In this document: positions 24,918 through 43,397 of the stretch, piece by piece
Layout: each line of letters starts with the position of its first letter
Numbering within the stretch: the stretch's first letter is position 1
From: Paraphysomonas bandaiensis
Lineage: Eukaryota > Protista > Chrysophyceae
Reading direction: 5' to 3'
DNA: 64,000 nt
NCBI GenBank assembly: GCA_965644295.1
Contig: CBFFRP010000434.1
Coordinates: 62,001-126,000, forward strand
Translations under genes and position numbers: made by a program
Notes under the pieces: generated by a model
What the model saw: the letters and a program-made list of their open reading frames with translations, nothing else
Database searches by the model: none
Told to the model about the DNA's origin: nothing

Positions 24918-26138
24918 GTGTTGTAATAATAGTAGCACAACGAAGTGTCACAAATGGATATGTAATGTACAATGTCGCCATTGTTGTCAAACTATACGCT
25001 CAAGTAAGGGTGAACTTTTAGCATAAAGTATCTATTTTAATGCATTCGAACCGCCAATGGCTGGCGTAAATAATGTTGTGAAGGTGAATCAGCTGGATGA
25101 GAAGATCTGTATATCCTAAATGTGTACAATCATATTCGTTTCGCCTGAAAATCATTTCCTTTCTGTCGTATGATGTCTAAAAGAACTCACCATAGAGGGT
25201 ATAGTGTACTACCTTTAATGCATGAAATATTCCGTATGTTCTAGCAGGCTACTATATCGTTTATTCTGAATACTGAATATATTTTGAGAGTGCAGGTACT
25301 AAAAGACCCTTGTAAATTTATTACAGTAGAAGCAAGATGGCACGATAAATGGCTTGCAATATCTAATCATACTTAGATCGAAAAGAGAACCCATGCATGC
25401 TTTAGCTACAGGTTAGTCATGAGCAACATCGATAACACCATTGTCAACGCATTGATCCAGTCAACGCATCAGATAATACCAAATCCTTAATATTTCACAT
25501 ACCGGGGCTAGAATATCGTTTTATTTTGAATATATATACTTTTAAGATTTCGCTCTATACAAAAGTAGCCGTGAAGATTCAAACGTGAATAGTACTACTA
25601 ACACTTCACAAAACGCATACTGTAGTAGTTAGAACTGGAAGTAAAAGTTAAAGATTCAGCGAATAAGAACATCTGGACTTATCATAAAATGTGACTGATC
25701 GATGTCAAAGCAAATATCCATACCTTGTCATAATAATAGTTCATGCAATAAACTTAAACGATACTACCCCACTGAGTAACCTATTCAAAAAGAGTGAACA
25801 GAACAAGTTCCTAGTCAATAAAATAAGTATAATATGCTAGATCTATAGTTATAGGAACGATGACTCAAAAACGTAATCATAACATCTGGTGGCTGGCGGA
25901 ACACAGTAACACATATATATATCCATGACCACAGATACATCAACATGTCACCCATACATTCCCTGCAATGTGGATGTATAATATAAATAATGCTCAGACA
26001 TCCAAGGAAGTTTAAGCCCCATATCACTGTGGCTGGCGGCACACAGTAATGGTCGGCGGTCACTGCGTATGATGTTCCACAGATACATCAACATGTCACC
26101 CATACATTCCCTGCAATGTGGATGTATAATATAAATAA

Positions 26139-26249
26139 TGCTCAGACATCCAAGGAAGTTTAAGCCCCATATCACTGTGGCTGGCGGCACACAGTAATGG
26201 TCGACGGTCACTGCGTATGGTTCGGGGTTACCCGGTTATCATCATAGCA
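26139..26249 (-). ncRNA. U14: U14 snoRNA, 3'-most complete copy (CCGTCG variant)
   Basis: Same boxes and guide domains; one substitution downstream of domain A. Confidence 0.92.
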
Positions 26250-29200
26250 CTATTTCACATACATACATACCCAGGCATACTTACACACAACATCAAACAA
26301 CAAGAACACACATATATATATCCATGACCACAGATACATCAACATGTCACCCATACATTCCCTGCAATGTGGATGTATAATATAAATAATGCTCAGACAT
26401 CCAAGGAAGTTTAAGCCCCATATCACTGTGGCTGGCGGCACACAGTAATGGTCGGCGGTCACTGCGTATGATGTTCCACAGATACATCAACATGTCACCC
26501 ATACATTCCCTGCAATGTGGATGTATAATATAAATAATGCTCAGACATCCAAGGAAGTTTAAGCCCCATATCACTGTGGCTGGCGGCACACAGTAATGGT
26601 CGACGGTCACTGCGTATGGTTCGGGGTTACCCGGTTATCATCATAGCACTATTTCACATACATACATACCCAGGCATACTTACACACAACATCAAACAAC
26701 AAGAACACACATATATATATCCATGACCACAGATACATCAACATGTCACCCATACATTCCCTGCAATGTGGATGTATAATATAAATAATGCTCAGACATC
26801 CAAGGAAGTTTAAGCCCCATATCACTGTGGCTGGCGGCACACAGTAATGGTCGGCGGTCACTGCGTATGATGTTCCACAGATACATCAACATGTCACCCA
26901 TACATTCCCTGCAATGTGGATGTATAATATAAATAATGCTCAGACATCCAAGGAAGTTTAAGCCCCATATCACTGTGGCTGGCGGCACACAGTAATGGTC
27001 GACGGTCACTGCGTATGGTTCGGGGTTACCCGGTTATCATCATAGCACTATTTCACATACATACATACCCAGGCATACTTACACACAACATCAAACAACA
27101 AGAATACACATATATATATCCATGACCACAGATACATCAACATGTCACCCATACATTCCCTGCAATGTGGATGTATAATATAAATAATGCTCAGACATCC
27201 AAGGAAGTTTAAGCCCCATATCACTGTGGCTGGCGGCACACAGTAATGGTCGGCGGTCACTGCGTATGGTTCGGGGTTACCCGGTTATCATCATAGCACT
27301 ATTTCACATACATACATACCCAGGCATACTTACACACAACATCAAACAACAAGAACACACATATATATATCCATGACCACAGATACATCAACATGTCACC
27401 CATACATTCCCTGCAATGTGGATGTATAATATAAATAATGCTCAGACATCCAAGGAAGTTTAAGCCCCATATCACTGTGGCTGGCGGCACACAGTAATGG
27501 TCGGCGGTCACTGCGTATGATGTTCCACAGATACATCAACATGTCACCCATACATTCCCTGCAATGTGGATGTATAATATAAATAATGCTCAGACATCCA
27601 AGGAAGTTTAAGCCCCATATCACTGTGGCTGGCGGCACACAGTAATGGTCGACGGTCACTGCGTATGGTTCGGGGTTACCCGGTTATCATCATAGCACTA
27701 TTTCACATACATACATACCCAGGCATACTTACACACAACATCAAACAACAAGAATACACATATATATATCCATGACCACAGATACATCAACATGTCACCC
27801 ATACATTCCCTGCAATGTGGATGTATAATATAAATAATGCTCAGACATCCAAGGAAGTTTAAGCCCCATATCACTGTGGCTGGCGGCACACAGTAATGGT
27901 CGGCGGTCACTGCGTATGGTTCGGGGTTACCCGGTTATCATCATAGCACTATTTCACATACATACATACATACCCAGGCATACTTACACACAACATCAAA
28001 CAACAAGAATACACATATATATATCCATGACCACAGATACATCAACATGTCACCCATACATTCCCTGCAATGTGGATGTATAATATAAATAATGCTCAGA
28101 CATCCAAGGAAGTTTAAGCCCCATATCACTGTGGCTGGCGGCACACAGTAATGGTCGGCGGTCACTGCGTATGGTTCGGGGTTACCCGGTTATCATCATA
28201 GCACTATTTCACATACATACATACCCAGGCATACTTGCACACAACATCAAACAACAAGAACACACATATATATATCCATGACCACAGATACATCAACATG
28301 TCACCCATACATTCCCTGCAATGTGGATGTATAATATAAATAATGCTCAGACATCCAAGGAAGTTTAAGCCCCATATCACTGTGGCTGGCGGCACACAGT
28401 AATGGTCGGCGGTCACTGCGTATGGTTCGGGGTTACCCGGTTATCATCATAGCACTATTTCACATACACATACATACCCAGGCATACTTACACACAACAT
28501 CAAACAACAAGAATACACATATATATATCCATGACCACAGATACATCAACATGTCACCCATACATTCCCTGCAATGTGGATGTATAATATAAATAATGCT
28601 CAGACATCCAAGGAAGTTTAAGCCCCATATCACTGTGGCTGGCGGCACACAGTAATGGTCGGCGGTCACTGCGTATGGTTCGGGGTTACCCGGTTATCAT
28701 CATAGCACTATTTCACATACATACATACATACCCAGGCATACTTGCACACAACATCAAACAACAAGAACACACATATATATATCCATGACCACAGATACA
28801 TCAACATGTCACCCATACATTCCCTGCAATGTGGATGTATAATATAAATAATGCTCAGACATCCAAGGAAGTTTAAGCCCCATATCACTGTGGCTGGCGG
28901 CACACAGTAATGGTCGGCGGTCACTGCGTATGGTTCGGGGTTACCCGGTTATCATCATAGCACTATTTCACATACATACATACATACCCAGGCATACTTG
29001 CACACAACATCAAACAACAAGAACACACATATATATATCCATGACCACAGATACATCAACATGTCACCCATACATTCCCTGCAATGTGGATGTATAATAT
29101 AAATAATGCTCAGACATCCAAGGAAGTTTAAGCCCCATATCACTGTGGCTGGCGGCACACAGTAATGGTCGGCGGTCACTGCGTATGGTTCGGGGTTACC

Positions 29201-32200
29201 CGGTTATCATCATAGCACTATTTCACATACATACATACATACCCAGGCATACTTGCACACAACATCAAACAACAAGAACACACATATATATATCCATGAC
29301 CACAGATACATCAACATGTCACCCATACATTCCCTGCAATGTGGATGTATAATATAAATAATGCTCAGACATCCAAGGAAGTTTAAGCCCCATATCACTG
29401 TGGCTGGCGGCACACAGTAATGGTCGGCGGTCACTGCGTATGGTTCGGGGTTACCCGGTTATCATCATAGCACTATTTCACATACATACATACATACCCA
29501 GGCATACTTGCACACAACATCAAACAACAAGAACACACATATATATATCCATGACCACAGATACATCAACATGTCACCCATACATTCCCTGCAATGTGGA
29601 TGTATAATATAAATAATGCTCAGACATCCAAGGAAGTTTAAGCCCCATATCACTGTGGCTGGCGGCACACAGTAATGGTCGGCGGTCACTGCGTATGGTT
29701 CGGGGTTACCCGGTTATCATCATAGCACTATTTCACATACATACATACATACCCAGGCATACTTGCACACAACATCAAACAACAAGAACACACATATATA
29801 TATCCATGACCACAGATACATCAACATGTCACCCATACATTCCCTGCAATGTGGATGTATAATATAAATAATGCTCAGACATCCAAGGAAGTTTAAGCCC
29901 CATATCACTGTGGCTGGCGGCACACAGTAATGGTCGGCGGTCACTGCGTATGGTTCGGGGTTACCCGGTTATCATCATAGCACTATTTCACATATCATAC
30001 ATACATACCCAGGCATACTTGCACACAACATCAAACAACAAGAACACACATATATATATCCATGACCACAGATACATCAACATGTCACCCATACATTCCC
30101 TGCAATGTGGATGTATAATATAAATAATGCTCAGACATCCAAGGAAGTTTAAGCCCCATATCACTGTGGCTGGCGGCACACAGTAATGGTCGGCGGTCAC
30201 TGCGTATGGTTCGGGGTTACCCGGTTATCATCATAGCACTATTTCACATACATACATACATACCCAGGCATACTTACACACAACATCAAACAACAAGAAT
30301 ACACATATATATATCCATGACCACAGATACATCAACATGTCACCCATACATTCCCTGCAATGTGGATGTATAATATAAATAATGCTCAGACATCCAAGGA
30401 AGTTTAAGCCCCATATCACTGTGGCTGGCGGCACACAGTAATGGTCGGCGGTCACTGCGTATGGTTCGGGGTTACCCGGTTATCATCATAGCACTATTTC
30501 ACATACATACATACATACCCAGGCATACTTGCACACAACATCAAACAACAAGAACACACATATATATATCCATGACCACAGATACATCAACATGTCACCC
30601 ATACATTCCCTGCAATGTGGATGTATAATATAAATAATGCTCAGACATCCAAGGAAGTTTAAGCCCCATATCACTGTGGCTGGCGGCACACAGTAATGGT
30701 CGGCGGTCACTGCGTATGGTTCGGGGTTACCCGGTTATCATCATAGCACTATTTCACATACATACATACATACCCAGGCATACTTACACACAACATCAAA
30801 CAACAAGAACACACATATATATATCCATGACCACAGATACATCAACATGTCACCCATACATTCCCTGCAATGTGGATGTATAATATAAATAATGCTCAGA
30901 CATCCAAGGAAGTTTAAGCCCCATATCACTGTGGCTGGCGGCACACAGTAATGGTCGGCGGTCACTGCGTATGGTTCGGGGTTACCCGGTTATCATCATA
31001 GCACTATTTCACATACATACATACATACCCAGGCATACTTGCACACAACATCAAACAACAAGAACACACATATATATATCCATGACCACAGATACATCAA
31101 CATGTCACCCATACATTCCCTGCAATGTGGATGTATAATATAAATAATGCTCAGACATCCAAGGAAGTTTAAGCCCCATATCACTGTGGCTGGCGGCACA
31201 CAGTAATGGTCGGCGGTCACTGCGTATGGTTCGGGGTTACCCGGTTATCATCATAGCACTATTTCACATACATACATACATACCCAGGCATACTTACACA
31301 CAACATCAAACAACAAGAACACACATATATATATCCATGACCACAGATACATCAACATGTCACCCATACATTCCCTGCAATGTGGATGTATAATATAAAT
31401 AATGCTCAGACATCCAAGGAAGTTTAAGCCCCATATCACTGTGGCTGGCGGCACACAGTAATGGTCGGCGGTCACTGCGTATGGTTCGGGGTTACCCGGT
31501 TATCATCATAGCACTATTTCACATACATACATACATACCCAGGCATACTTACACACAACATCAAACAACAAGAACACACATATATATATCCATGACCACA
31601 GATACATCAACATGTCACCCATACATTCCCTGCAATGTGGATGTATAATATCCAGACATCAGATAGCCTCAACATGTCGCACACATTCCCTGCGATGTGG
31701 AGGTATCATATAGATAATACTCATACATCCCAGGAACTTCACACAATATCACTGTGGCTGGCGGCACACAGTAATGGTCGGCGGTCACTGCGTATGGTTC
31801 AGGGTTACCCGATTATCATCATAGCACTATGTTCACATACATACATACATACCCAGGCATACTTACACACAACATCAAACAACAAGAACACACATATATA
31901 TATCCATGACCACAGATACATCAACATGTCACCCATACATTCCCTGCAATGTGGATGTATAATATAAATAATGCTCAGACATCCAAGGAAGTTTAAGCCC
32001 CATATCACTGTGGCTGGCGGCACACAGTAATGGTCGGCGGTCACTGCGTATGGTTCGGGGTTACCCGGTTATCATCATAGCACTATTTCACATACATACA
32101 TACATACCCAGGCATACTTACACACAACATCAAACAACAAGAACACACATATATATATCCATGACCACAGATACATCAACATGTCACCCATACATTCCCT

Positions 32201-35200
32201 GCAATGTGGATGTATAATATAAATAATGCTCAGACATCCAAGGAAGTTTAAGCCCCATATCACTGTGGCTGGCGGCACACAGTAATGGTCGGCGGTCACT
32301 GCGTATGGTTCGGGGTTACCCGGTTATCATCATAGCACTATTTCACATACATACATACATACCCAGGCATACTTGCACACAACATCAAACAACAAGAACA
32401 CACATATATATATCCATGACCACAGATACATCAACATGTCACCCATACATTCCCTGCAATGTGGATGTATAATATAAATAATGCTCAGACATCCAAGGAA
32501 GTTTAAGCCCCATATCACTGTGGCTGGCGGCACACAGTAATGGTCGGCGGTCACTGCGTATGGTTCGGGGTTACCCGGTTATCATCATAGCACTATTTCA
32601 CATACATACATACATACCCAGGCATACTTACACACAACATCAAACAACAAGAACACACATATATATATCCATGACCACAGATACATCAACATGTCACCCA
32701 TACATTCCCTGCAATGTGGATGTATAATATAAATAATGCTCAGACATCCAAGGAAGTTTAAGCCCCATATCACTGTGGCTGGCGGCACACAGTAATGGTC
32801 GGCGGTCACTGCGTATGGTTCGGGGTTACCCGGTTATCATCATAGCACTATTTCACATACATACATACATACCCAGGCATACTTGCACACAACATCAAAC
32901 AACAAGAACACACATATATATATCCATGACCACAGATACATCAACATGTCACCCATACATTCCCTGCAATGTGGATGTATAATATAAATAATGCTCAGAC
33001 ATCCAAGGAAGTTTAAGCCCCATATCACTGTGGCTGGCGGCACACAGTAATGGTCGGCGGTCACTGCGTATGGTTCGGGGTTACCCGGTTATCATCATAG
33101 CACTATTTCACATACATACATACATACCCAGGCATACTTGCACACAACATCAAACAACAAGAACACACATATATATATCCATGACCACAGATACATCAAC
33201 ATGTCACCCATACATTCCCTGCAATGTGGATGTATAATATAAATAATGCTCAGACATCCAAGGAAGTTTAAGCCCCATATCACTGTGGCTGGCGGCACAC
33301 AGTAATGGTCGGCGGTCACTGCGTATGGTTCGGGGTTACCCGGTTATCATCATAGCACTATTTCACATACATACATACATACCCAGGCATACTTGCACAC
33401 AACATCAAACAACAAGAACACACATATATATATCCATGACCACAGATACATCAACATGTCACCCATACATTCCCTGCAATGTGGATGTATAATATAAATA
33501 ATGCTCAGACATCCAAGGAAGTTTAAGCCCCATATCACTGTGGCTGGCGGCACACAGTAATGGTCGGCGGTCACTGCGTATGGTTCGGGGTTACCCGGTT
33601 ATCATCATAGCACTATTTCACATACATACATACATACCCAGGCATACTTGCACACAACATCAAACAACAAGAACACACATATATATATCCATGACCACAG
33701 ATACATCAACATGTCACCCATACATTCCCTGCAATGTGGATGTATAATATAAATAATGCTCAGACATCCAAGGAAGTTTAAGCCCCATATCACTGTGGCT
33801 GGCGGCACACAGTAATGGTCGGCGGTCACTGCGTATGGTTCGGGGTTACCCGGTTATCATCATAGCACTATTTCACATACATACATACATACCCAGGCAT
33901 ACTTGCACACAACATCAAACAACAAGAACACACATATATATATCCATGACCACAGATACATCAACATGTCACCCATACATTCCCTGCAATGTGGATGTAT
34001 AATATAAATAATGCTCAGACATCCAAGGAAGTTTAAGCCCCATATCACTGTGGCTGGCGGCACACAGTAATGGTCGGCGGTCACTGCGTATGGTTCGGGG
34101 TTACCCGGTTATACAGTACATGGTCGGCGGTCACTGCGTATGGTTCAGGGTTACCCGGTTATCATCATAGCACTATTTCACATACATACATACATACCCA
34201 GGCATACTTGCACACAACATCAAACAACAAGAACACACATATATATATCCATGACCACAGATACATCAACATGTCACCCATACATTCCCTGCAATGTGGA
34301 TGTATAATATAAATAATGCTCAGACATCCAAGGAAGTTTAAGCCCCATATCACTGTGGCTGGCGGCACACAGTAATGGTCGGCGGTCACTGCGTATGGTT
34401 CGGGGTTACCCGGTTATCATCATAGCACTATTTCACATACATACATACATACATACCCAGGCATACTTACACACAACATCAAACAACAAGAATACACATA
34501 TATATATCCATGACCACAGATACATCAACATGTCACCCATACATTCCCTGCAATGTGGATGTATAATATAAATAATGCTCAGACATCCAAGGAAGTTTAA
34601 GCCCCATATCACTGTGGCTGGCGGCACACAGTAATGGTCGGCGGTCACTGCGTATGGTTCGGGGTTACCCGGTTATCATCATAGCACTATTTCACATACA
34701 TACATACATACCCAGGCATACTTGCACACAACATCAAACAACAAGAACACACATATATATATCCATGACCACAGATACATCAACATGTCACCCATACATT
34801 CCCTGCAATGTGGATGTATAATATAAATAATGCTCAGACATCCAAGGAAGTTTAAGCCCCATATCACTGTGGCTGGCGGCACACAGTAATGGTCGGCGGT
34901 CACTGCGTATGGTTCGGGGTTACCCGGTTATCATCATAGCACTATTTCACATACATACATACATACCCAGGCATACTTACACACAACATCAAACAACAAG
35001 AACACACATATATATATCCATGACCACAGATACATCAACATGTCACCCATACATTCCCTGCAATGTGGATGTATAATATAAATAATGCTCAGACATCCAA
35101 GGAAGTTTAAGCCCCATATCACTGTGGCTGGCGGCACACAGTAATGGTCGGCGGTCACTGCGTATGGTTCGGGGTTACCCGGTTATCATCATAGCACTAT

Positions 35201-38200
35201 TTCACATACATACATACATACCCAGGCATACTTGCACACAACATCAAACAACAAGAACACACATATATATATCCATGACCACAGATACATCAACATGTCA
35301 CCCATACATTCCCTGCAATGTGGATGTATAATATAAATAATGCTCAGACATCCAAGGAAGTTTAAGCCCCATATCACTGTGGCTGGCGGCACACAGTAAT
35401 GGTCGGCGGTCACTGCGTATGGTTCGGGGTTACCCGGTTATCATCATAGCACTATTTCACATACATACATACATACCCAGGCATACTTGCACACAACATC
35501 AAACAACAAGAACACACATATATATATCCATGACCACAGATACATCAACATGTCACCCATACATTCCCTGCAATGTGGATGTATAATATAAATAATGCTC
35601 AGACATCCAAGGAAGTTTAAGCCCCATATCACTGTGGCTGGCGGCACACAGTAATGGTCGGCGGTCACTGCGTATGTTAGGGTGATAGGCGGGTATCATC
35701 ATAGCACTATTTCACATACATACATACATACCCAGGCATACTTGCACACAACATCAAACAACAAGAACACACATATATATATCCATGACCACAGATACAT
35801 CAACATGTCACCCATACATTCCCTGCAATGTGGATGTATAATATAAATAATGCTCAGACATCCAAGGAAGTTTAAGCCCCATATCACTGTGGCTGGCGGC
35901 ACACAGTAATGGTCGGCGGTCACTGCGTATGGTTCGGGGTTACCCGGTTATCATCATAGCACTATTTCACATACATACATACATACCCAGGCATACTTGC
36001 ACACAACATCAAACAACAAGAACACACATATATATATCCATGACCACAGATACATCAACATGTCACCCATACATTCCCTGCAATGTGGATGTATAATATA
36101 AATAATGCTCAGACATCCAAGGAAGTTTAAGCCCCATATCACTGTGGCTGGCGGCACACAGTAATGGTCGGCGGTCACTGCGTATGGTTCGGGGTTACCC
36201 GGTTATCATCATAGCACTATTTCACATACATACATACATACATACCCAGGCATACTTGCACACAACATCAAACAACAAGAACACACATATATATATCCAT
36301 GACCACAGATACATCAACATGTCACCCATACATTCCCTGCAATGTGGATGTATAATATAAATAATGCTCAGACATCCAAGGAAGTTTAAGCCCCATATCA
36401 CTGTGGCTGGCGGCACACAGTAATGGTCGGCGGTCACTGCGTATGGTTCGGGGTTACCCGGTTATCATCATAGCACTATTTCACATACATACATACATAC
36501 CCAGGCATACTTGCACACAACATCAAACAACAAGAACACACATATATATATCCATGACCACAGATACATCAACATGTCACCCATACATTCCCTGCAATGT
36601 GGATGTATAATATAAATAATGCTCAGACATCCAAGGAAGTTTAAGCCCCATATCACTGTGGCTGGCGGCACACAGTAATGGTCGGCGGTCACTGCGTATG
36701 GTTCGGGGTTACCCGGTTATCATCATAGCACTATTTCACATACATACATACATACCCAGGCATACTTGCACACAACATCAAACAACAAGAACACACATAT
36801 ATATATCCATGACCACAGATACATCAACATGTCACCCATACATTCCCTGCAATGTGGATGTATAATATAAATAATGCTCAGACATCCAAGGAAGTTTAAG
36901 CCCCATATCACTGTGGCTGGCGGCACACAGTAATGGTCGGCGGTCACTGCGTATGGTTCGGGGTTACCCGGTTATCATCATAGCACTATTTCACATACAT
37001 ACATACATACCCAGGCATACTTGCACACAACATCAAACAACAAGAACACACATATATATATCCATGACCACAGATACATCAACATGTCACCCATACATTC
37101 CCTGCAATGTGGATGTATAATATAAATAATGCTCAGACATCCAAGGAAGTTTAAGCCCCATATCACTGTGGCTGGCGGCACACAGTAATGGTCGGCGGTC
37201 ACTGCGTATGGTTCTGGGTTACCCGGTTATCATCATAGCACTATTTCACATACATACATACATACCCAGGCATACTTGCACACAACATCAAACAACAAGA
37301 ACACACATATATATATCCATGACCACAGATACATCAACATGTCACCCATACATTCCCTGCAATGTGGATGTATAATATAAATAATGCTCAGACATCCAAG
37401 GAAGTTTAAGCCCCATATCACTGTGGCTGGCGGCACACAGTAATGGTCGGCGGTCACTGCGTATGGTTCGGGGTTACCCGGTTATCATCATAGCACTATT
37501 TCACATACATACATACATACATACCCAGGCATACTTGCACACAACATCAAACAACAAGAACACACATATATATATCCATGACCACAGATACATCAACATG
37601 TCACCCATACATTCCCTGCAATGTGGATGTATAATATAAATAATGCTCAGACATCCAAGGAAGTTTAAGCCCCATATCACTGTGGCTGGCGGCACACAGT
37701 AATGGTCGGCGGTCACTGCGTATGGTTCGGGGTTACCCGGTTATCATCATAGCACTATTTCACATACATACATACATACCCAGGCATACTTGCACACAAC
37801 ATCAAACAACAAGAACACACATATATATATCCATGACCACAGATACATCAACATGTCACCCATACATTCCCTGCAATGTGGATGTATAATATAAATAATG
37901 CTCAGACATCCAAGGAAGTTTAAGCCCCATATCACTGTGGCTGGCGGCACACAGTAATGGTCGGCGGTCACTGCGTATGGTTCGGGGTTACCCGGTTATC
38001 ATCATAGCACTATTTCACATACATACATACATACCCAGGCATACTTGCACACAACATCAAACAACAAGAACACACATATATATATCCATGACCACAGATA
38101 CATCAACATGTCACCCATACATTCCCTGCAATGTGGATGTATAATATAAATAATGCTCAGACATCCAAGGAAGTTTAAGCCCCATATCACTGTGGCTGGC

Positions 38201-40233
38201 GGCACACAGTAATGGTCGGCGGTCACTGCGTATGGTTCGGGGTTACCCGGTTATCATCATAGCACTATTTCACATACATACATACATACATACCCAGGCA
38301 TACTTACACACAACATCAAACAACAAGAACACACATATATATATCCATGACCACAGATACATCAACATGTCACCCATACATTCCCTGCAATGTGGATGTA
38401 TAATATAAATAATGCTCAGACATCCAAGGAAGTTTAAGCCCCATATCACTGTGGCTGGCGGCACACAGTAATGGTCGGCGGTCACTGCGTATGGTTCGGG
38501 GTTACCCGGTTATCATCATAGCACTATTTCACATACATACATACATACCCAGGCATACTTACACACAACATCAAACAACAAGAATACACATATATATATC
38601 CATGACCACAGATACATCAACATGTCACCCATACATTCCCTGCAATGTGGATGTATAATATAAATAATGCTCAGACATCCAAGGAAGTTTAAGCCCCATA
38701 TCACTGTGGCTGGCGGCACACAGTAATGGTCGGCGGTCACTGCGTATGGTTCGGGGTTACCCGGTTATCATCATAGCACTATTTCACATACATACATACA
38801 TACCCAGGCATACTTACACACAACATCAAACAACAAGAACACACATATATATATCCATGACCACAGATACATCAACATGTCACCCATACATTCCCTGCAA
38901 TGTGGATGTATAATATAAATAATGCTCAGACATCCAAGGAAGTTTAAGCCCCATATCACTGTGGCTGGCGGCACACAGTAATGGTCGGCGGTCACTGCGT
39001 ATGGTTCGGGGTTACCCGGTTATCATCATAGCACTATTTCACATACATACATACATACCCAGGCATACTTACACACAACATCAAACAACAAGAATACACA
39101 TATATATATCCATGACCACAGATACATCAACATCTCACCCATACATTCCCTGCAATGTGGATGTATAATATAAATAATGCTCAGACATCCAAGGAAGTTT
39201 AAGCCCCATATCACTGTGGCTGGCGGCACACAGTAATGGTCGGCGGTCACTGCGTATGGTTCGGGGTTACCCGGTTATCATCATAGCACTATTTCACATA
39301 CATACATACCCAGGCATACTTACACACAACATCAAACAACAAGAACACACATATATATATCCATGACCACAGATACATCAACATGTCACCCATACATTCC
39401 CTGCAATGTGGATGTATAATATAAATAATGCTCAGACATCCAAGGAAGTTTAAGCCCCATATCACTGTGGCTGGCGGCACACAGTAATGGTCGGCGGTCA
39501 CTGCGTATGGTTCGGGGTTACCCGGTTATCATCATAGCACTATTTCACATACATACATACATACCCAGGCATACTTGCACACAACATCAAACAACAAGAA
39601 CACACATATATATATCCATGACCACAGATACATCAACATGTCACCCATACATTCCCTGCAATGTGGATGTATAATATAAATAATGCTCAGACATCCAAGG
39701 AAGTTTAAGCCCCATATCACTGTGGCTGGCGGCACACAGTAATGGTCGGCGGTCACTGCGTATGGTTCGGGGTTACCCGGTTATCATCATAGCACTATTT
39801 CACATACATACATACATACCCAGGCATACTTACACACAACATCAAACAACAAGAATACACATATATATATCCATGACCACAGATACATCAACATGTCACC
39901 CATACATTCCCTGCAATGTGGATGTATAATATAAATAATGCTCAGACATCCAAGGAAGTTTAAGCCCCATATCACTGTGGCTGGCGGCACACAGTAATGG
40001 TCGGCGGTCACTGCGTATGGTTCAATGGCGGCACACAGTAATGGTCGGCGGTCACTGCGTATGGTTCGGGGTTACCCGGTTATCATCATAGCACTATTTC
40101 ACATACATACATACCCAGGCATACTTACACACAACATCAAACAACAAGAATACACATATATATATCCATGACCACAGATACATCAACATGTCACCCATAC
40201 ATTCCCTGCAATGTGGATGTATAATATAAATAA

Positions 40234-40344
40234 TGCTCAGACATCCAAGGAAGTTTAAGCCCCATATCACTGTGGCTGGCGGCACACAGTAATGGTCGGC
40301 GGTCACTGCGTATGGTTCGGGGTTACCCGGTTATCATCATAGCA
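40234..40344 (-). ncRNA. U14: U14 snoRNA, 5'-most copy (representative unit, 111 nt)
   Basis: Box C 40340-40334, box D 40240-40237, terminal stem TGC/GCA. Domain B is complementary to the conserved 18S sequence ACAUCCAAGGAA. Confidence 0.95.
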
Positions 40345-40876
40345 CTATTTCACATACATACATACATACCCAGGCATACTTACACACAACATCAAACAAC
40401 AAGAATACACATATATATATCCATGACCACAGATACATCAACATGTCACCCATACATTCCCTGCAATGTGGATGTATAATATAAAAAATAGTAAATATAG
40501 TTATATGCAGGTTCACTGTTTTTCTTCTTTGCTGTACGCAACTGTCCTGTATAGAGTGTAGCATATGGAATAATTATGAGATCACATATTCATAGCCTGA
40601 TTTAGGTGCACCATGAATTTTTTCGTTATTATTGAATTTTCATTTCAGTCATACGATGTATCAGCGATATATAAACAGACAACAGTCTACATTAACCTGT
40701 ATTCGTTGTGTTCATTGAGTTGAGTCATAAACACGCTGTATATGAAGAAATAAGCAGCGAACTGTATACGACATGCAGATGTAGAAGGAACAGTGAAGTA
40801 TATTGCAGTCGTCTAAAACACTTCATAGCACATATATATATTGTCGAGTATACCTGTGTTATGTATCTCAAAGTGC

Positions 40877-42523
40877 TTATCTGCGAGGTGGCTGGTAGTG
40901 GCTAGGAGGTTGCTGCTGATGGGGAAGCGAATGAGAACCATAGTTGGACGAAGGAACCATTCCTAAAGAGGGAGCTGATATGCCTGAAAACTGGTTGTAA
41001 GTAGGCCTCGATTCATGCTGCGGCGAAGCCTGGGAATGAATGGCGTGTTGTGGTGATACGTGCTGATGTTGGTACTGGCCTTGGTATTGTACCGGTGGTG
41101 CTGGGTACTGTAGCGGCGGTGTGGGTATCTGGGAGCGCTCCCACTCGTCGACTCTCTGCCTGACAGCTCTATAGGCTTGATCAATCCCTTGAGGGGAGCC
41201 CGAAATTGTAACTTCTCTCTCAGTATCCTCCCCTGGGCCGGGTTTGCTCACTTGTACAGAACACTGGGACGAGCGCTCAATCTCTGACACACCAGATCCT
41301 TTGGCGCCAATCAAGAAGTTTACCGCCTTCGAGGGAACCTAGCAATACGACCGTCACAAACAAATCATCCGTATATTAACGAGTATAGACATGCACAACG
41401 GATTACCATGCATGTGCATAGTGCACAAACTTACCTTCATATTAATAAACGGTGTGTAAGCATTGGAAGGGTGCTGGTGCGTGGCCTGGTGCTGATGAGC
41501 GGATTGGTGCTGTTGGTGTGGAGGGGGTTGATGGTGTAGATGAGGATGATGATCTATTCCTGGAGAAGTGAGAGGACCACCCATACCAGTAACTGGTGGA
41601 GGCACACCACCGGCCGTACGAATAGGTAGCGGCATCATTGTTTGCATTCCTTTCCATGTTTCAGGAAGGTTCGAATCCTCCACGAGTTGCCTCAGAAGCA
41701 AATATGCCGCATGTATACGGTTCTGTATACCTCCTACGAGGTGCATGGAGCGACCATACACAGTATGTCGAGCACTTAGCATTTCCCGTTCGCTCTCGGA
41801 ATTAATATGACAGCCAGAAGTATTCTGGGTTTTCTTTATAAGTGATCCGGACTTACCAATAATATGAGAAACAAGCTCAGAGGGAACAACAATAGTGAGT
41901 TTATCGACCATAGCGGCTAGGGCAGTTTCAAAAGGTCCACCAGTTGGTACTCCACGTTTACTTTCATGAGCTTTCTGTAGCTGAACCAGAAGGGAGGTAT
42001 ACCCTGCAAGGACTGCTTTCACCGAACCAAAAAAAAATATGGTGCGGAGCGGAGGAGGAGAAGTGGGGGGGCACGATTGCTTGTCCACTTGTATCAAGCA
42101 CCCCATTTCGCGCGCTATTGACCGTACACGGGCCCCTTTCTCCCCTATAATTACCGAAATCAGGCGTACATCATCAGGAACCTGTACGGCGAAAGTAATA
42201 TTCCTGCTATCTACACTGTCTTTCATATATACACTCTCTGTAAGTTCCTTGACTCGCTCCAGCGCATTATTAGTGGCTACAACAGCGGCAGGGACTTTTA
42301 CAGCTTGACCATCTGGTGCTTCGCCCTCGCCACTAGCCTGTCGTTTAACACTATCGCCGGGTGTTAAGCTATCTTCGGCAGGACGCTTCCGGCTCTGAAT
42401 AAAAGATATCACAGATTCCAACAGAGACACAGCTGTCTCTTTCCCTCCTGAGCCCTTCAGAAAGAAATCCGCAATATCTTCTACATTTCGAGAGGCCACT
42501 TGAACACCAGACAGAGAACTCAT
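40877..42523 (-). CDS. Triple KH-domain RNA-binding protein (PCBP/FLK-like), 2 exons
   Basis: Three GxxG KH loops: ISVIIGEKGARVRSI, VSHIIGKSGSLIKK, VNFLIGAKGSGVSEI. Pro/Gln/His-rich linkers. Probable ATG at 42523 (MSSLSG). Confidence 0.88.
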
Positions 42524-42695
42524 CTTCAGGCAAGAGAGTGCAGAGGTATCACGATAAGCGGATAATACAAGATGATAAATATTACTGCCAGTGGCTATTG
42601 CGCAACACAACAGAACACCCTGCAGAATATGGAAATAACTTCGCTTCGAAATAATACAACAATAATATTGCACGGCCATCCATCTATACATACTG

Positions 42696-43268
42696 TACAT
42701 ACATACATACATACATACATACATACATACATACATACATACATACATACATACATACATACATACATACATACATACATACATACATACATACATACAT
42801 ACATACATACATACATACACACATACATACATACATACATACATACATACATACATACATACATACATACATACATACATACATACATACATACATACAT
42901 ACATACATACATACATACATACATACATACATACATACATACATACATACATACATACATACATACATACATACATACATACATACATACACATACATAC
43001 ATACATACATACATACATACATACATACATACATACATACATACATACATACATACATACATACATACATACATACATACATACATACATACATACATAC
43101 ATACATACATACATACATACATACATACATACATACATACATACATACATACATACATACATACATACATACATACATACATACATACATACATACATAC
43201 ATACATACATACATACATACATACATACATACATACATACATACATACATACATACATACCTACATAC
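42696..43268. repeat. (TACA)n tetranucleotide microsatellite, ~570 bp
   Basis: Nearly uninterrupted ACAT repeats; source of the spurious MYVC/HTYI ORFs. Confidence 0.99.
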
Positions 43269-43397
43269 AATGTGCGTAAGTTACAGAGTTTGTATGTATG
43301 TATATCTGAATAAATTTATGCATTTATACAGCTGTTTTGTGTAGATTTATGCACTTATGTAATTTAGGCAGGTGCACACTACATGTACACAGTAATC

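Follow-up and report, generated by a model that had tools for sequence, protein, structure and literature searches.

A head-to-tail array of U14-like box C/D snoRNA genes in the chrysophyte Paraphysomonas bandaiensis

The window analyzed here, a stretch of 64,000 nucleotides from the genome of Paraphysomonas bandaiensis, a marine stramenopile that possesses silicon transporters, contains a tandem array in which all copies are arranged head to tail on the minus strand (Table 1). Tandem Repeats Finder called a single array at 25909-40489 with a main period of 255 bp, 50 copies and 90% matches, and placed period variants of 148, 251 and 399 bp at its low-coordinate end. When the units were anchored at box D (n=58), 36 of them measured 255 bp, seven 251 bp, four 259 bp and four 148 bp, the rest being single lengths from 253 to 315 bp. 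Box C is present in 54 of the 58 units, and the complete box C/D RNA comprises about 113 nt, with about 50 copies being canonical. A 115-nt segment containing the snoRNA is identical in 45 copies, and four further copies carry one C>T exchange. Among the remaining copies with box C, one has a single-base difference, one a divergent 5' part, two are extended to 159 and 165 nt by internal duplications, and one is degenerate. Both box C and the upstream spacer are missing from the four 148-bp units. The original prediction, made from the letters of the window, had located about 58 units, about 54 of them with box C, at 25889-40485, which is correct within a few bases. The minus-strand motifs it had listed, ATGATGA, CCATACGCAGT and TTCCTTGGATGT-CTGA within a terminal GTGC/GCAT stem, were recovered as described.

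Table 1. Features of the array and its surroundings (positions in the window)
Feature	Position	Strand	Evidence or remarks
Whole U14-like tandem array	25909..40496	-	58 units, 54 with complete box C/D gene
Representative U14-type gene, 113 nt, identical in 45 units	30382..30494	-	Rfam RF00016, predicted fold
Box C (UGAUGA, preceded by A) of the representative copy	30483..30488	-	Sequence and Rfam alignment
Box D (CUGA) of the representative copy	30386..30389	-	Sequence and Rfam alignment
Domain A, CCAUACGCAGU	30454..30464	-	11/11 complementary to own 18S positions 86-96
Domain B, CUUCCUUGGAUGU	30390..30402	-	13 bp with own 18S ACAUCCAAGGAAG
Representative spacer	30495..30636	-	Variable (GTAT)3-5 run, donor-like GGGTATGT, acceptor-like ATTGCAG/G
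Higher-order repeat zone, transcript-distal end	25994..27589	-	251-bp units alternating with four truncated 148-bp units
148-bp units without box C	25994-26141, 26393-26540, 26792-26939, 27442-27589	-	Box D anchoring
Degenerate copy (box D changed to AUGA, domain B damaged)	31721..31832	-	Unit-by-unit sequence comparison
Unit with 50-nt internal duplication repeating domain A	34015..34319	-	Tandem Repeats Finder and unit comparison
Unit with 44-nt internal duplication repeating domain A	39942..40236	-	Tandem Repeats Finder and unit comparison
Upstream same-strand neighbour, KH-domain (PCBP-like) gene	40635..43270	-	mRNA contigs; stop codon 40877-40879

The spacers are 136-144 nt long across the units. 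Compared with shuffled sequences, neither these spacers nor those of a second snoRNA array described below showed additional folding stability (z +0.7 and +0.9), so that a processing hairpin cannot be claimed. Within the array, diversity amounts to about 0.007 in the snoRNA and about 0.006 in the spacer when gap columns are excluded. As both values are equally tiny, they do not allow selection on the copies to be deduced from within the array.

On its high-coordinate side the array is preceded by the KH-domain gene, whose introns at 41339-41434 (96 nt) and 40736-40853 (118 nt) are spliced in RNA contigs. The mRNA contigs of this gene stop at about position 40635, approximately 140 nt ahead of the array. 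A repeat is found inside the KH gene at 42696-42819. For an open reading frame of 461 amino acids downstream of the array, an exact-protein look-up returned nothing on record.

In 54 units the sequences AUGAUGA and CUGA are enclosed by a GUGC/GCAU terminal stem, and the predicted fold of the representative copy combines this stem with an internal hairpin. Every unit is matched by the Rfam model SNORD14 (RF00016) from one end of the model to the other (positions 1-111 of 111, 49.2-49.8 bits, E 3e-9). Since the score of 49.2 bits is lower than the gathering score of RF00016, 64 bits, a scan of the whole window at the curated thresholds gave no match, and SNORD14 appears only with E-value reporting. 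For calibration, environmental U14 RNAs selected by the same motifs were scored; they reached 47-98 bits, and four out of five fell below 64. Thus, the Rfam match that had been anticipated was obtained as a full-length alignment, but not at the gathering score. The original reading of the repeat as U14-type is borne out by box C, box D, the terminal stem, domains A and B, the internal hairpin and the SNORD14 alignment in every unit; judged by this predicted anatomy, the array units are of the U14 type.

The fit between these RNAs and the ribosomal RNA of the same organism was analyzed with 18S copies that were located in its own genome by a conserved sequence pattern. All five copies holding the 5' region read ACTGCGTATGG, with a U at a place where eukaryotes conserve an A, as also seen in the Rfam eukaryotic SSU consensus. 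The Rfam U14 consensus at domain A is CAUUCGCAGU, and the standard T is present at the corresponding position in all 166 environmental U14 sequences (120 metagenome loci); an A occurs only in the U14 of this organism. The exchange of A to U at 18S position 92 is hence accompanied by an exchange of U to A in domain A, a compensatory pair which restores the duplex to 11/11. The target originally proposed for domain A, ACUGCGAAUGG, is not taken from the organism's own 18S, which reads ACUGCGUAUGG. The latter removes what would have been an A-A mismatch and thereby makes the case for U14 stronger. At the level of sequence, this covariation with the own 18S is the strongest evidence for the U14 identity of the array, and such a natural compensatory pair supports the pairing of domain A with helix 6 outside yeast. 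The yeast U14 domain A duplex comprises 13 bp; that of the array has 11 bp and is shifted relative to yeast. No D' box (CUGA) follows domain A, so that this domain is not a methylation guide. Domain B, on the other side, directly abuts box D, which places C407 (own 18S numbering) in the fifth pair counted from that box. This agrees with the earlier expectation from the D+5 rule, which pointed to the C equivalent to yeast Cm414.

A whole-genome search of the 62.5-Mb assembly with an exact pattern gave 58 matches, 57 of them in the array and one in a solo unit on contig C413. The array and this solo unit are the sole U14 loci in the assembly. The C413 copy is a piece of array 1.1 units long with array spacer flanking it on both sides, which identifies the array as its parent. 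Contigs C2 and C266, considered as carriers of a further array from the ends of DNA-run contigs, have just 13-18 nt in common with the unit, all of low complexity, and thus do not carry one. In the DNA run X18 the word depth of the array unitig was 19,864 as compared to 91.2 for a flank contig, a ratio of about 218 that may reflect strain variation. The 31-mers from this unitig occur 57-59 times in the window. DNA word depth therefore suggests a true copy number of roughly 200 or more, as compared to 57 assembled copies. Read depth had been named beforehand as a check on the copy number, and its outcome contradicts an inflation of the array during assembly. That only a few real copies exist and were expanded by the assembler is extremely improbable, also in view of the ordered variants and the 399-bp higher-order repeat within the array. 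Masking as satellites and collapse by assemblers are the usual fate of such arrays, so that snoRNA annotations and copy-number estimates in protist genomes miss them.

The genome contains a second array, made up of 32 units of 182 bp with a snoZ157-like snoRNA (51.9 bits). It sits between the Helicase_C and CTE_SPB4 exons, in an intron of a same-strand SPB4-type helicase gene. The presence of many snoRNAs in one intron implies that the organism is able to free snoRNAs from multi-copy precursors and does not need a separate intron for each of them. Tandem amplification thus seems to be a general way in which this genome organizes snoRNA genes rather than a peculiarity of U14. The original prediction had suggested amplification of one processing snoRNA with dosage selection. 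Amplification of U14 is indeed observed, but with another snoRNA arrayed in 32 copies a dosage selection specific for U14 is not required.

RNA evidence was sought by placing contigs from RNA and DNA libraries on positions 40150-42650 (2501 letters) on the KH-gene side of the array. These are assembled contigs, which are blind to small RNAs, RNA ends and levels and from which rare or unstable forms drop out. Contigs from the RNA libraries X1 (281 nt) and X11 (285 nt) represent closed unit-to-unit sequences, i.e. whole unspliced units, and depth in X1 was 0 over the neighbouring introns and the intergenic gap. The polyA metatranscriptome X5 gave no array signal. Exon-exon joints between units were not seen in the contigs of X1, X5 and X11, which can miss rare forms, whereas both KH-gene introns are spliced in contigs of X1 and X5. 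The unit contigs in the RNA libraries could derive from carried-over DNA, because with about 200 copies a DNA carry-over of 0.1x would suffice to produce them.

Taken together, we consider it probable that the array represents the organism's own U14 (SNORD14/snR128-type) box C/D family, amplified head to tail, with transcription as a long precursor and cuts in the spacers as the putative route of expression. The family would have been homogenized by unequal exchange. By analogy to established U14 biology, in which U14 is a stable RNA of about 100-130 nt needed for 18S production, each RNA of about 113 nt would assemble with the box C/D core proteins (fibrillarin, Nop56, Nop58 and Snu13), domain A would pair with 18S positions 86-96 in the helix 6 region and act as a chaperone in the folding and processing of the 5' domain, and domain B would direct 2'-O-methylation to C407, which corresponds to yeast Cm414. 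More tentatively, one long precursor covering many units may be transcribed on the minus strand, either from a start immediately downstream of the KH gene or by read-through from that gene. Cleavage within the spacers and exonuclease trimming that halts at the snoRNP, rather than one splicing event per unit, might then free the snoRNAs, in the way known from polycistronic clusters of plants and yeast.

Release by splicing would be expected if the array were a repeated-intron host gene of the SNORD115/116 or SNHG14 design. Each unit would then consist of an intron of about 164 nt (GTATGT...TTGCAG) carrying U14 and a non-coding exon of about 91 nt; U14 would be freed from the spliced intron and the joined exons would form an unstable non-coding RNA. 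The donor-like GGGTATGT and the acceptor-like ATTGCAG/G do occupy constant positions in all complete units, the array opens with the acceptor half of a spacer, and the putative intron is close in size to the verified introns of the KH gene. Yet the donor falls within the length-variable (GTAT)n run, and only about 33 nt separate box D from the putative acceptor. The three RNA libraries yielded no inter-unit joint in spite of the spliced KH introns, within the limits of contigs for rare or unstable forms, and the sole array contigs are whole unspliced units. Moreover, the second array lies within one intron of a coding gene, where splicing of each unit would wreck the mRNA. We therefore regard this design as unlikely. 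Similarly small is the chance of its wider form, an independently arisen protist counterpart of SNORD115/116 in which a long non-coding host transcript with 50 to 200 modules of intron and mini-exon serves an essential rRNA-processing snoRNA, within an rDNA-like, concertedly evolving set of high-copy snoRNA arrays that would amount to a distinct mode of encoding the snoRNA repertoire.

The equal homogenization of snoRNA and spacer, the truncated, duplicated and degenerate units, the missing signal in polyA RNA and the fact that no per-unit promoter is evident would also fit a U14-derived satellite that is mostly or wholly silent, functional U14 then being supplied by the C413 solo copy or by a few array units. 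This is quite improbable in our view, as about 50 copies retain every functional element including the base matching the own 18S, and as the presumed independent source on C413 is itself flanked by array spacer. Array-type units are also present in two RNA libraries, and the other snoRNA array of this genome lies in an intron of an expressed gene. A non-genic satellite has no conserved functional product, whereas the unit found here encodes the only U14-type RNA of the genome, matched to its own 18S. Comparably low is the probability that each unit is transcribed on its own from a promoter in the spacer. Such a promoter might be seen in the TATATATAT run about 80 nt upstream of each snoRNA, and in the second array TATATTTATA is found about 20 nt upstream of the snoRNA. 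However, the distance between the TATA-like run of the U14 array and the mature 5' end is too large for direct initiation, the RNA-library contigs are continuous from unit to unit, and the absence of any run of at least four T residues behind the gene speaks against RNA polymerase III.

U14 is usually encoded by one to four gene copies, and 57 to about 200 near-identical copies of this snoRNA, which belongs to the few that are essential for the small ribosomal subunit, widen the known range of snoRNA gene organization. U14 of yeast is functionally described and essential (PMC10783500). The array RNA shares with U14 (RF00016 SNORD14; yeast snR128) the box C/D motifs with the terminal stem, domain A complementary to the helix 6 region of 18S, domain B beside box D at the Cm414/Cm462 equivalent and a hairpin between the two domains. 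It differs by its score of 49 bits, below 64, by the compensatory A opposite a lineage-specific U in 18S, and by the gene number. The earlier statement that no equivalent had been described was too strong, as mammalian SNORD115/116, plant U14 clusters and the snoRNA repeats of trypanosomatids and Euglena are analogues. Mammalian SNORD115 and SNORD116 are present in SNHG14 in 48 and 29 copies; they are orphan, imprinted and brain-specific snoRNAs, each copy of which sits in its own spliced intron between non-coding exons (PMC11608373, PMC12429941, PMC3413130). Like the array, they comprise tens of near-identical box C/D genes in a homogenized tandem repeat. In contrast to them, the array RNA has a canonical rRNA target with two 18S complementarities, the units measure 255 bp instead of about 2 kb, and the contigs gave no sign of splicing between units.

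Clustered snoRNA genes are likewise a feature of trypanosomatids, where transcription by RNA polymerase II is polycistronic and precursors are trans-spliced and polyadenylated (PMC6562600). The clusters of these organisms mix snoRNAs, whereas each array found here repeats one snoRNA, in an unrelated lineage. Tandemly repeated snoRNA clusters were reportedly described in Euglena by Moore and Russell in 2012; clusters are reiterated in tandem in both trypanosomatids and Euglena, and those of Euglena have mixed content. Literature searches turned up no relevant account of snoRNA arrays in diatoms. Gene clusters of U14 in maize and potato, giving rise to polycistronic pre-snoRNAs, are said to have been described by Leader et al. 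in 1994 and 1997 (reference given in PMC2875012), and the U14 RNAs of plant clusters are presumably freed from a common precursor in the absence of splicing. They resemble the array in having head-to-tail U14 genes on one strand with short spacers (100-150 nt in plants). Plant clusters contain two to four diverged copies; the stramenopile array contains 57 or more that are near-identical, and its polycistronic transcript is putative. Clusters of the plant type with two to four U14 copies were also found in metagenome contigs.

Tandem Repeats Finder places a single array in the window, at 25909-40489, with a main period of 255 bp (50 copies) and periods of 148, 251 and 399 bp at its low-coordinate end. 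When units were delimited by the minus-strand box D motif, 58 were obtained (36 of 255 bp, seven of 251 bp, four of 259 bp, four of 148 bp and the rest singles of 253 to 315 bp), 54 of which contain box C. The originally predicted coordinates and unit counts are correct. Unit variants were compared over a 115-nt snoRNA segment. Here, 45 copies are identical, four have one C>T in common, one carries one single-base difference and one more diverges in its 5' part. Internal duplications of 44-50 nt, repeating the 18S-complementary domain A, are present in two copies, and the box D of one degenerate copy is mutated. In the 399-bp higher-order repeat, 251-bp units alternate with the four 148-bp units, in which box C and most of the spacer are missing. 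The spacers of the array are 136-144 nt long, and most of their differences come from a (GTAT)3-5 run and from two variants of a single base.

At curated thresholds, no Rfam match was obtained in the window. With E-value reporting, every unit aligned with the whole SNORD14 model (1-111 of 111; E 3e-9), so the expected U14 match was found at full length, yet at 49.2 bits against the Rfam gathering score of 64. According to the Rfam alignment and a free fold, the RNA of the unit has box C and box D, is closed by a terminal stem of four pairs and contains an internal hairpin of six pairs. Five environmental U14s, chosen by the same diagnostic motifs as the array units, reached 98, 63, 61, 51 and 47 bits. 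Outside plants, animals and fungi, sub-threshold scores thus seem to be nothing unusual.

The organism's own 18S rRNA was located by a conserved pattern and then confirmed with Rfam. All five genomic 18S copies containing the 5' region have TGTGAAACTGCGTATGGCTCATTA, with U at position 92 (own numbering) in place of the A conserved in the Rfam consensus for eukaryotic SSU; they read ACUGCGUAUGG instead of the usual ACUGCGAAUGG. Domain A of the array, CCAUACGCAGU, is complementary to 18S positions 86-96 at 11/11 bases, as the U of the Rfam U14 consensus is replaced by A. The original prediction had named ACUGCGAAUGG as the target of domain A, which is not the sequence of this organism; the A-A mismatch expected with that target is gone, since the real one differs. 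Metagenome contigs were scanned for U14-type motifs with either base allowed at the variable domain A site, and all 166 U14s found, in 120 loci, have the standard base. A conserved rRNA position has thus undergone a rare change, and the guide carries the complementary one; this is hard to account for unless all or some of the array genes provide the working U14. Domain B, CUUCCUUGGAUGU, lies immediately 5' of box D and forms 13 pairs with ACAUCCAAGGAAG of the 18S. The fifth pair counted from box D involves C407, the equivalent of yeast Cm414 (PMC10783500), where the D+5 position had rightly been placed. Two partial 18S copies were also observed in non-rDNA sequence. The one on C196 follows the 18S for about 1.48 kb before diverging, the one on C68 lacks about the first 370 nt, and the two are identical wherever both are 18S.

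Features in the window and in the assembly of the organism (C, assembly contigs; L, extracted stretches)
Feature	Location	Strand	Description
KH-gene intron	window 41339-41434	minus	spliced, GT..AG, seen in runs X1 and X5
KH-gene intron in 3' UTR	window 40736-40853	minus	118 nt, spliced, GT..AG, seen in runs X1 and X5
Second homogeneous snoRNA array	L036:3321-9197 = C120:41320-47196	minus	32 units of 182 bp
Solo U14 unit	L037:4539-4825 = C413:12538-12824	minus	1.1-unit piece of the array, 92-96% identical
18S copies with U at position 92	C196, C437, C525, C551, C653		all copies holding the 5' region
Partial 18S copy	L041 (C196:104200-106500)		in non-rDNA sequence
Partial 18S copy	L042 (C68:176100-178300)		in non-rDNA sequence

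The public sequencing run X18 has the character of DNA, with a 2264-nt contig (word depth 91.2) that continues unspliced through both introns of the KH-domain (KH) gene, the same-strand neighbour upstream of the array, and through the intergenic gap. A 100-nt unitig within an array unit has a word depth of 19,864, about 218x that of the flank contig, a single-contig ratio that is still rough; summed depths are not copy numbers. The 31-mers of this unitig occur 57-59 times each in the window. Thus, the assembly under-represents the array, by a factor of about four provided that X18 and the assembly come from the same strain. An expansion artefact of the assembly, the alternative considered in the original prediction, is excluded by this comparison of DNA depth with assembled occurrences.

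In the 62.5-Mb assembly (669 contigs), an exact pattern of domain A core, domain B and box D has 58 matches, 57 in the array and one on C413, and the Rfam model scan agrees with these loci. The C413 copy is intact except for one G>A and adjoins an ORF of 207 aa that has no match in Pfam. As a 1.1-unit piece flanked at either end by array spacer, it is evidently derived from the array and not the reverse. The SNORD14 scan also matched the C120 array, whose unit is a different box C/D RNA (snoZ157/R69/R10-like, 51.9 bits vs a cut-off of 55). Since it is flanked by same-strand exons encoding Helicase_C and the SPB4 C-terminal extension (CTE_SPB4), this array is intronic, within a ribosome-biogenesis helicase gene of the SPB4/DDX55 type. 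Exonucleases alone cannot free 32 snoRNAs from a single intron, so the organism must cut between copies; plants and yeast do so in polycistronic snoRNA clusters. Elsewhere in the assembly, at least seven silicon-transporter (PF03842) loci were observed (C348, C406, C398, C150, C149, C298 and C405); most of them have open frames of about 500-560 aa, whereas that at C405 has 337 aa. These loci suggest a silicifying stramenopile, such as a diatom, and signature stretches of the 18S would also be of the stramenopile type; a diatom is the probable source.

Transcript evidence was taken from assembled contigs of public runs; those holding the array locus are marine plankton samples. The 3' UTR intron of the KH gene starts 24 nt past the stop codon (40877-40879), and the KH-gene contigs of X1 and X5 stop near 40635-40700, about 140 nt short of the array. 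At window position 41876, all four runs (DNA and RNA) have T vs C in the window, reflecting the assembly base or a strain difference, and the KH-gene ORF contains a short-word repeat (42696-42819) that spans 100 nt or more. On the array, X1 yielded one 281-nt contig representing a closed 251-bp unit and the random-primed metatranscriptome X11 one 285-nt contig representing a closed 255-bp unit ('goes back 255'), while the polyA metatranscriptome X5 yielded nothing. The depth of X1 is 0 in the KH introns and the intergenic gap, and its DNA carry-over is therefore low; at about 200 copies, even 0.1x DNA could give one such array contig. Transcription through whole units is likely, if unproven. 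Units of the 251-bp variant cluster towards the transcript-distal end of the array. Their presence in X1 would match a long transcript sampled with 3' bias, but is accounted for just as well by a difference between strains.

Splicing of every unit, as an intron with U14 followed by a non-coding mini-exon, is not supported, as the putative mini-exons are joined in no contig of X1, X5 or X11, although contigs can miss such forms. For the array, we infer both promoter and processing route: U14 would be released by cuts between the copies of a multi-unit precursor, as in plant and yeast polycistronic clusters, the route suggested for the C120 array and by analogy favoured here.

The 120 metagenome loci hold one U14 per contig in 90 cases, two in 16, three in 12 and four in two, a soft baseline as longer arrays would break short-read contigs. 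Environmental relatives (L093:1400-1700 and L155) have a similar U14 5' half, CCCGAACCATTCGCAGT..., with U14 in a dicistronic pair or beside another box C/D-like gene, and no long U14 arrays within the contigs examined. Analogues are the U14 clusters of plants, which have a few copies, and the snoRNA repeats of Euglena. Mammalian SNORD115/116 form repeated-intron arrays (PMC11608373, PMC12429941), and trypanosomatids have polycistronic snoRNA clusters (PMC6562600). Our literature search found no description of snoRNA arrays in diatoms. The principle of the U14 array is shared with known snoRNA arrays; new are the lineage, the restriction to one essential processing snoRNA per array and the unusual copy number.
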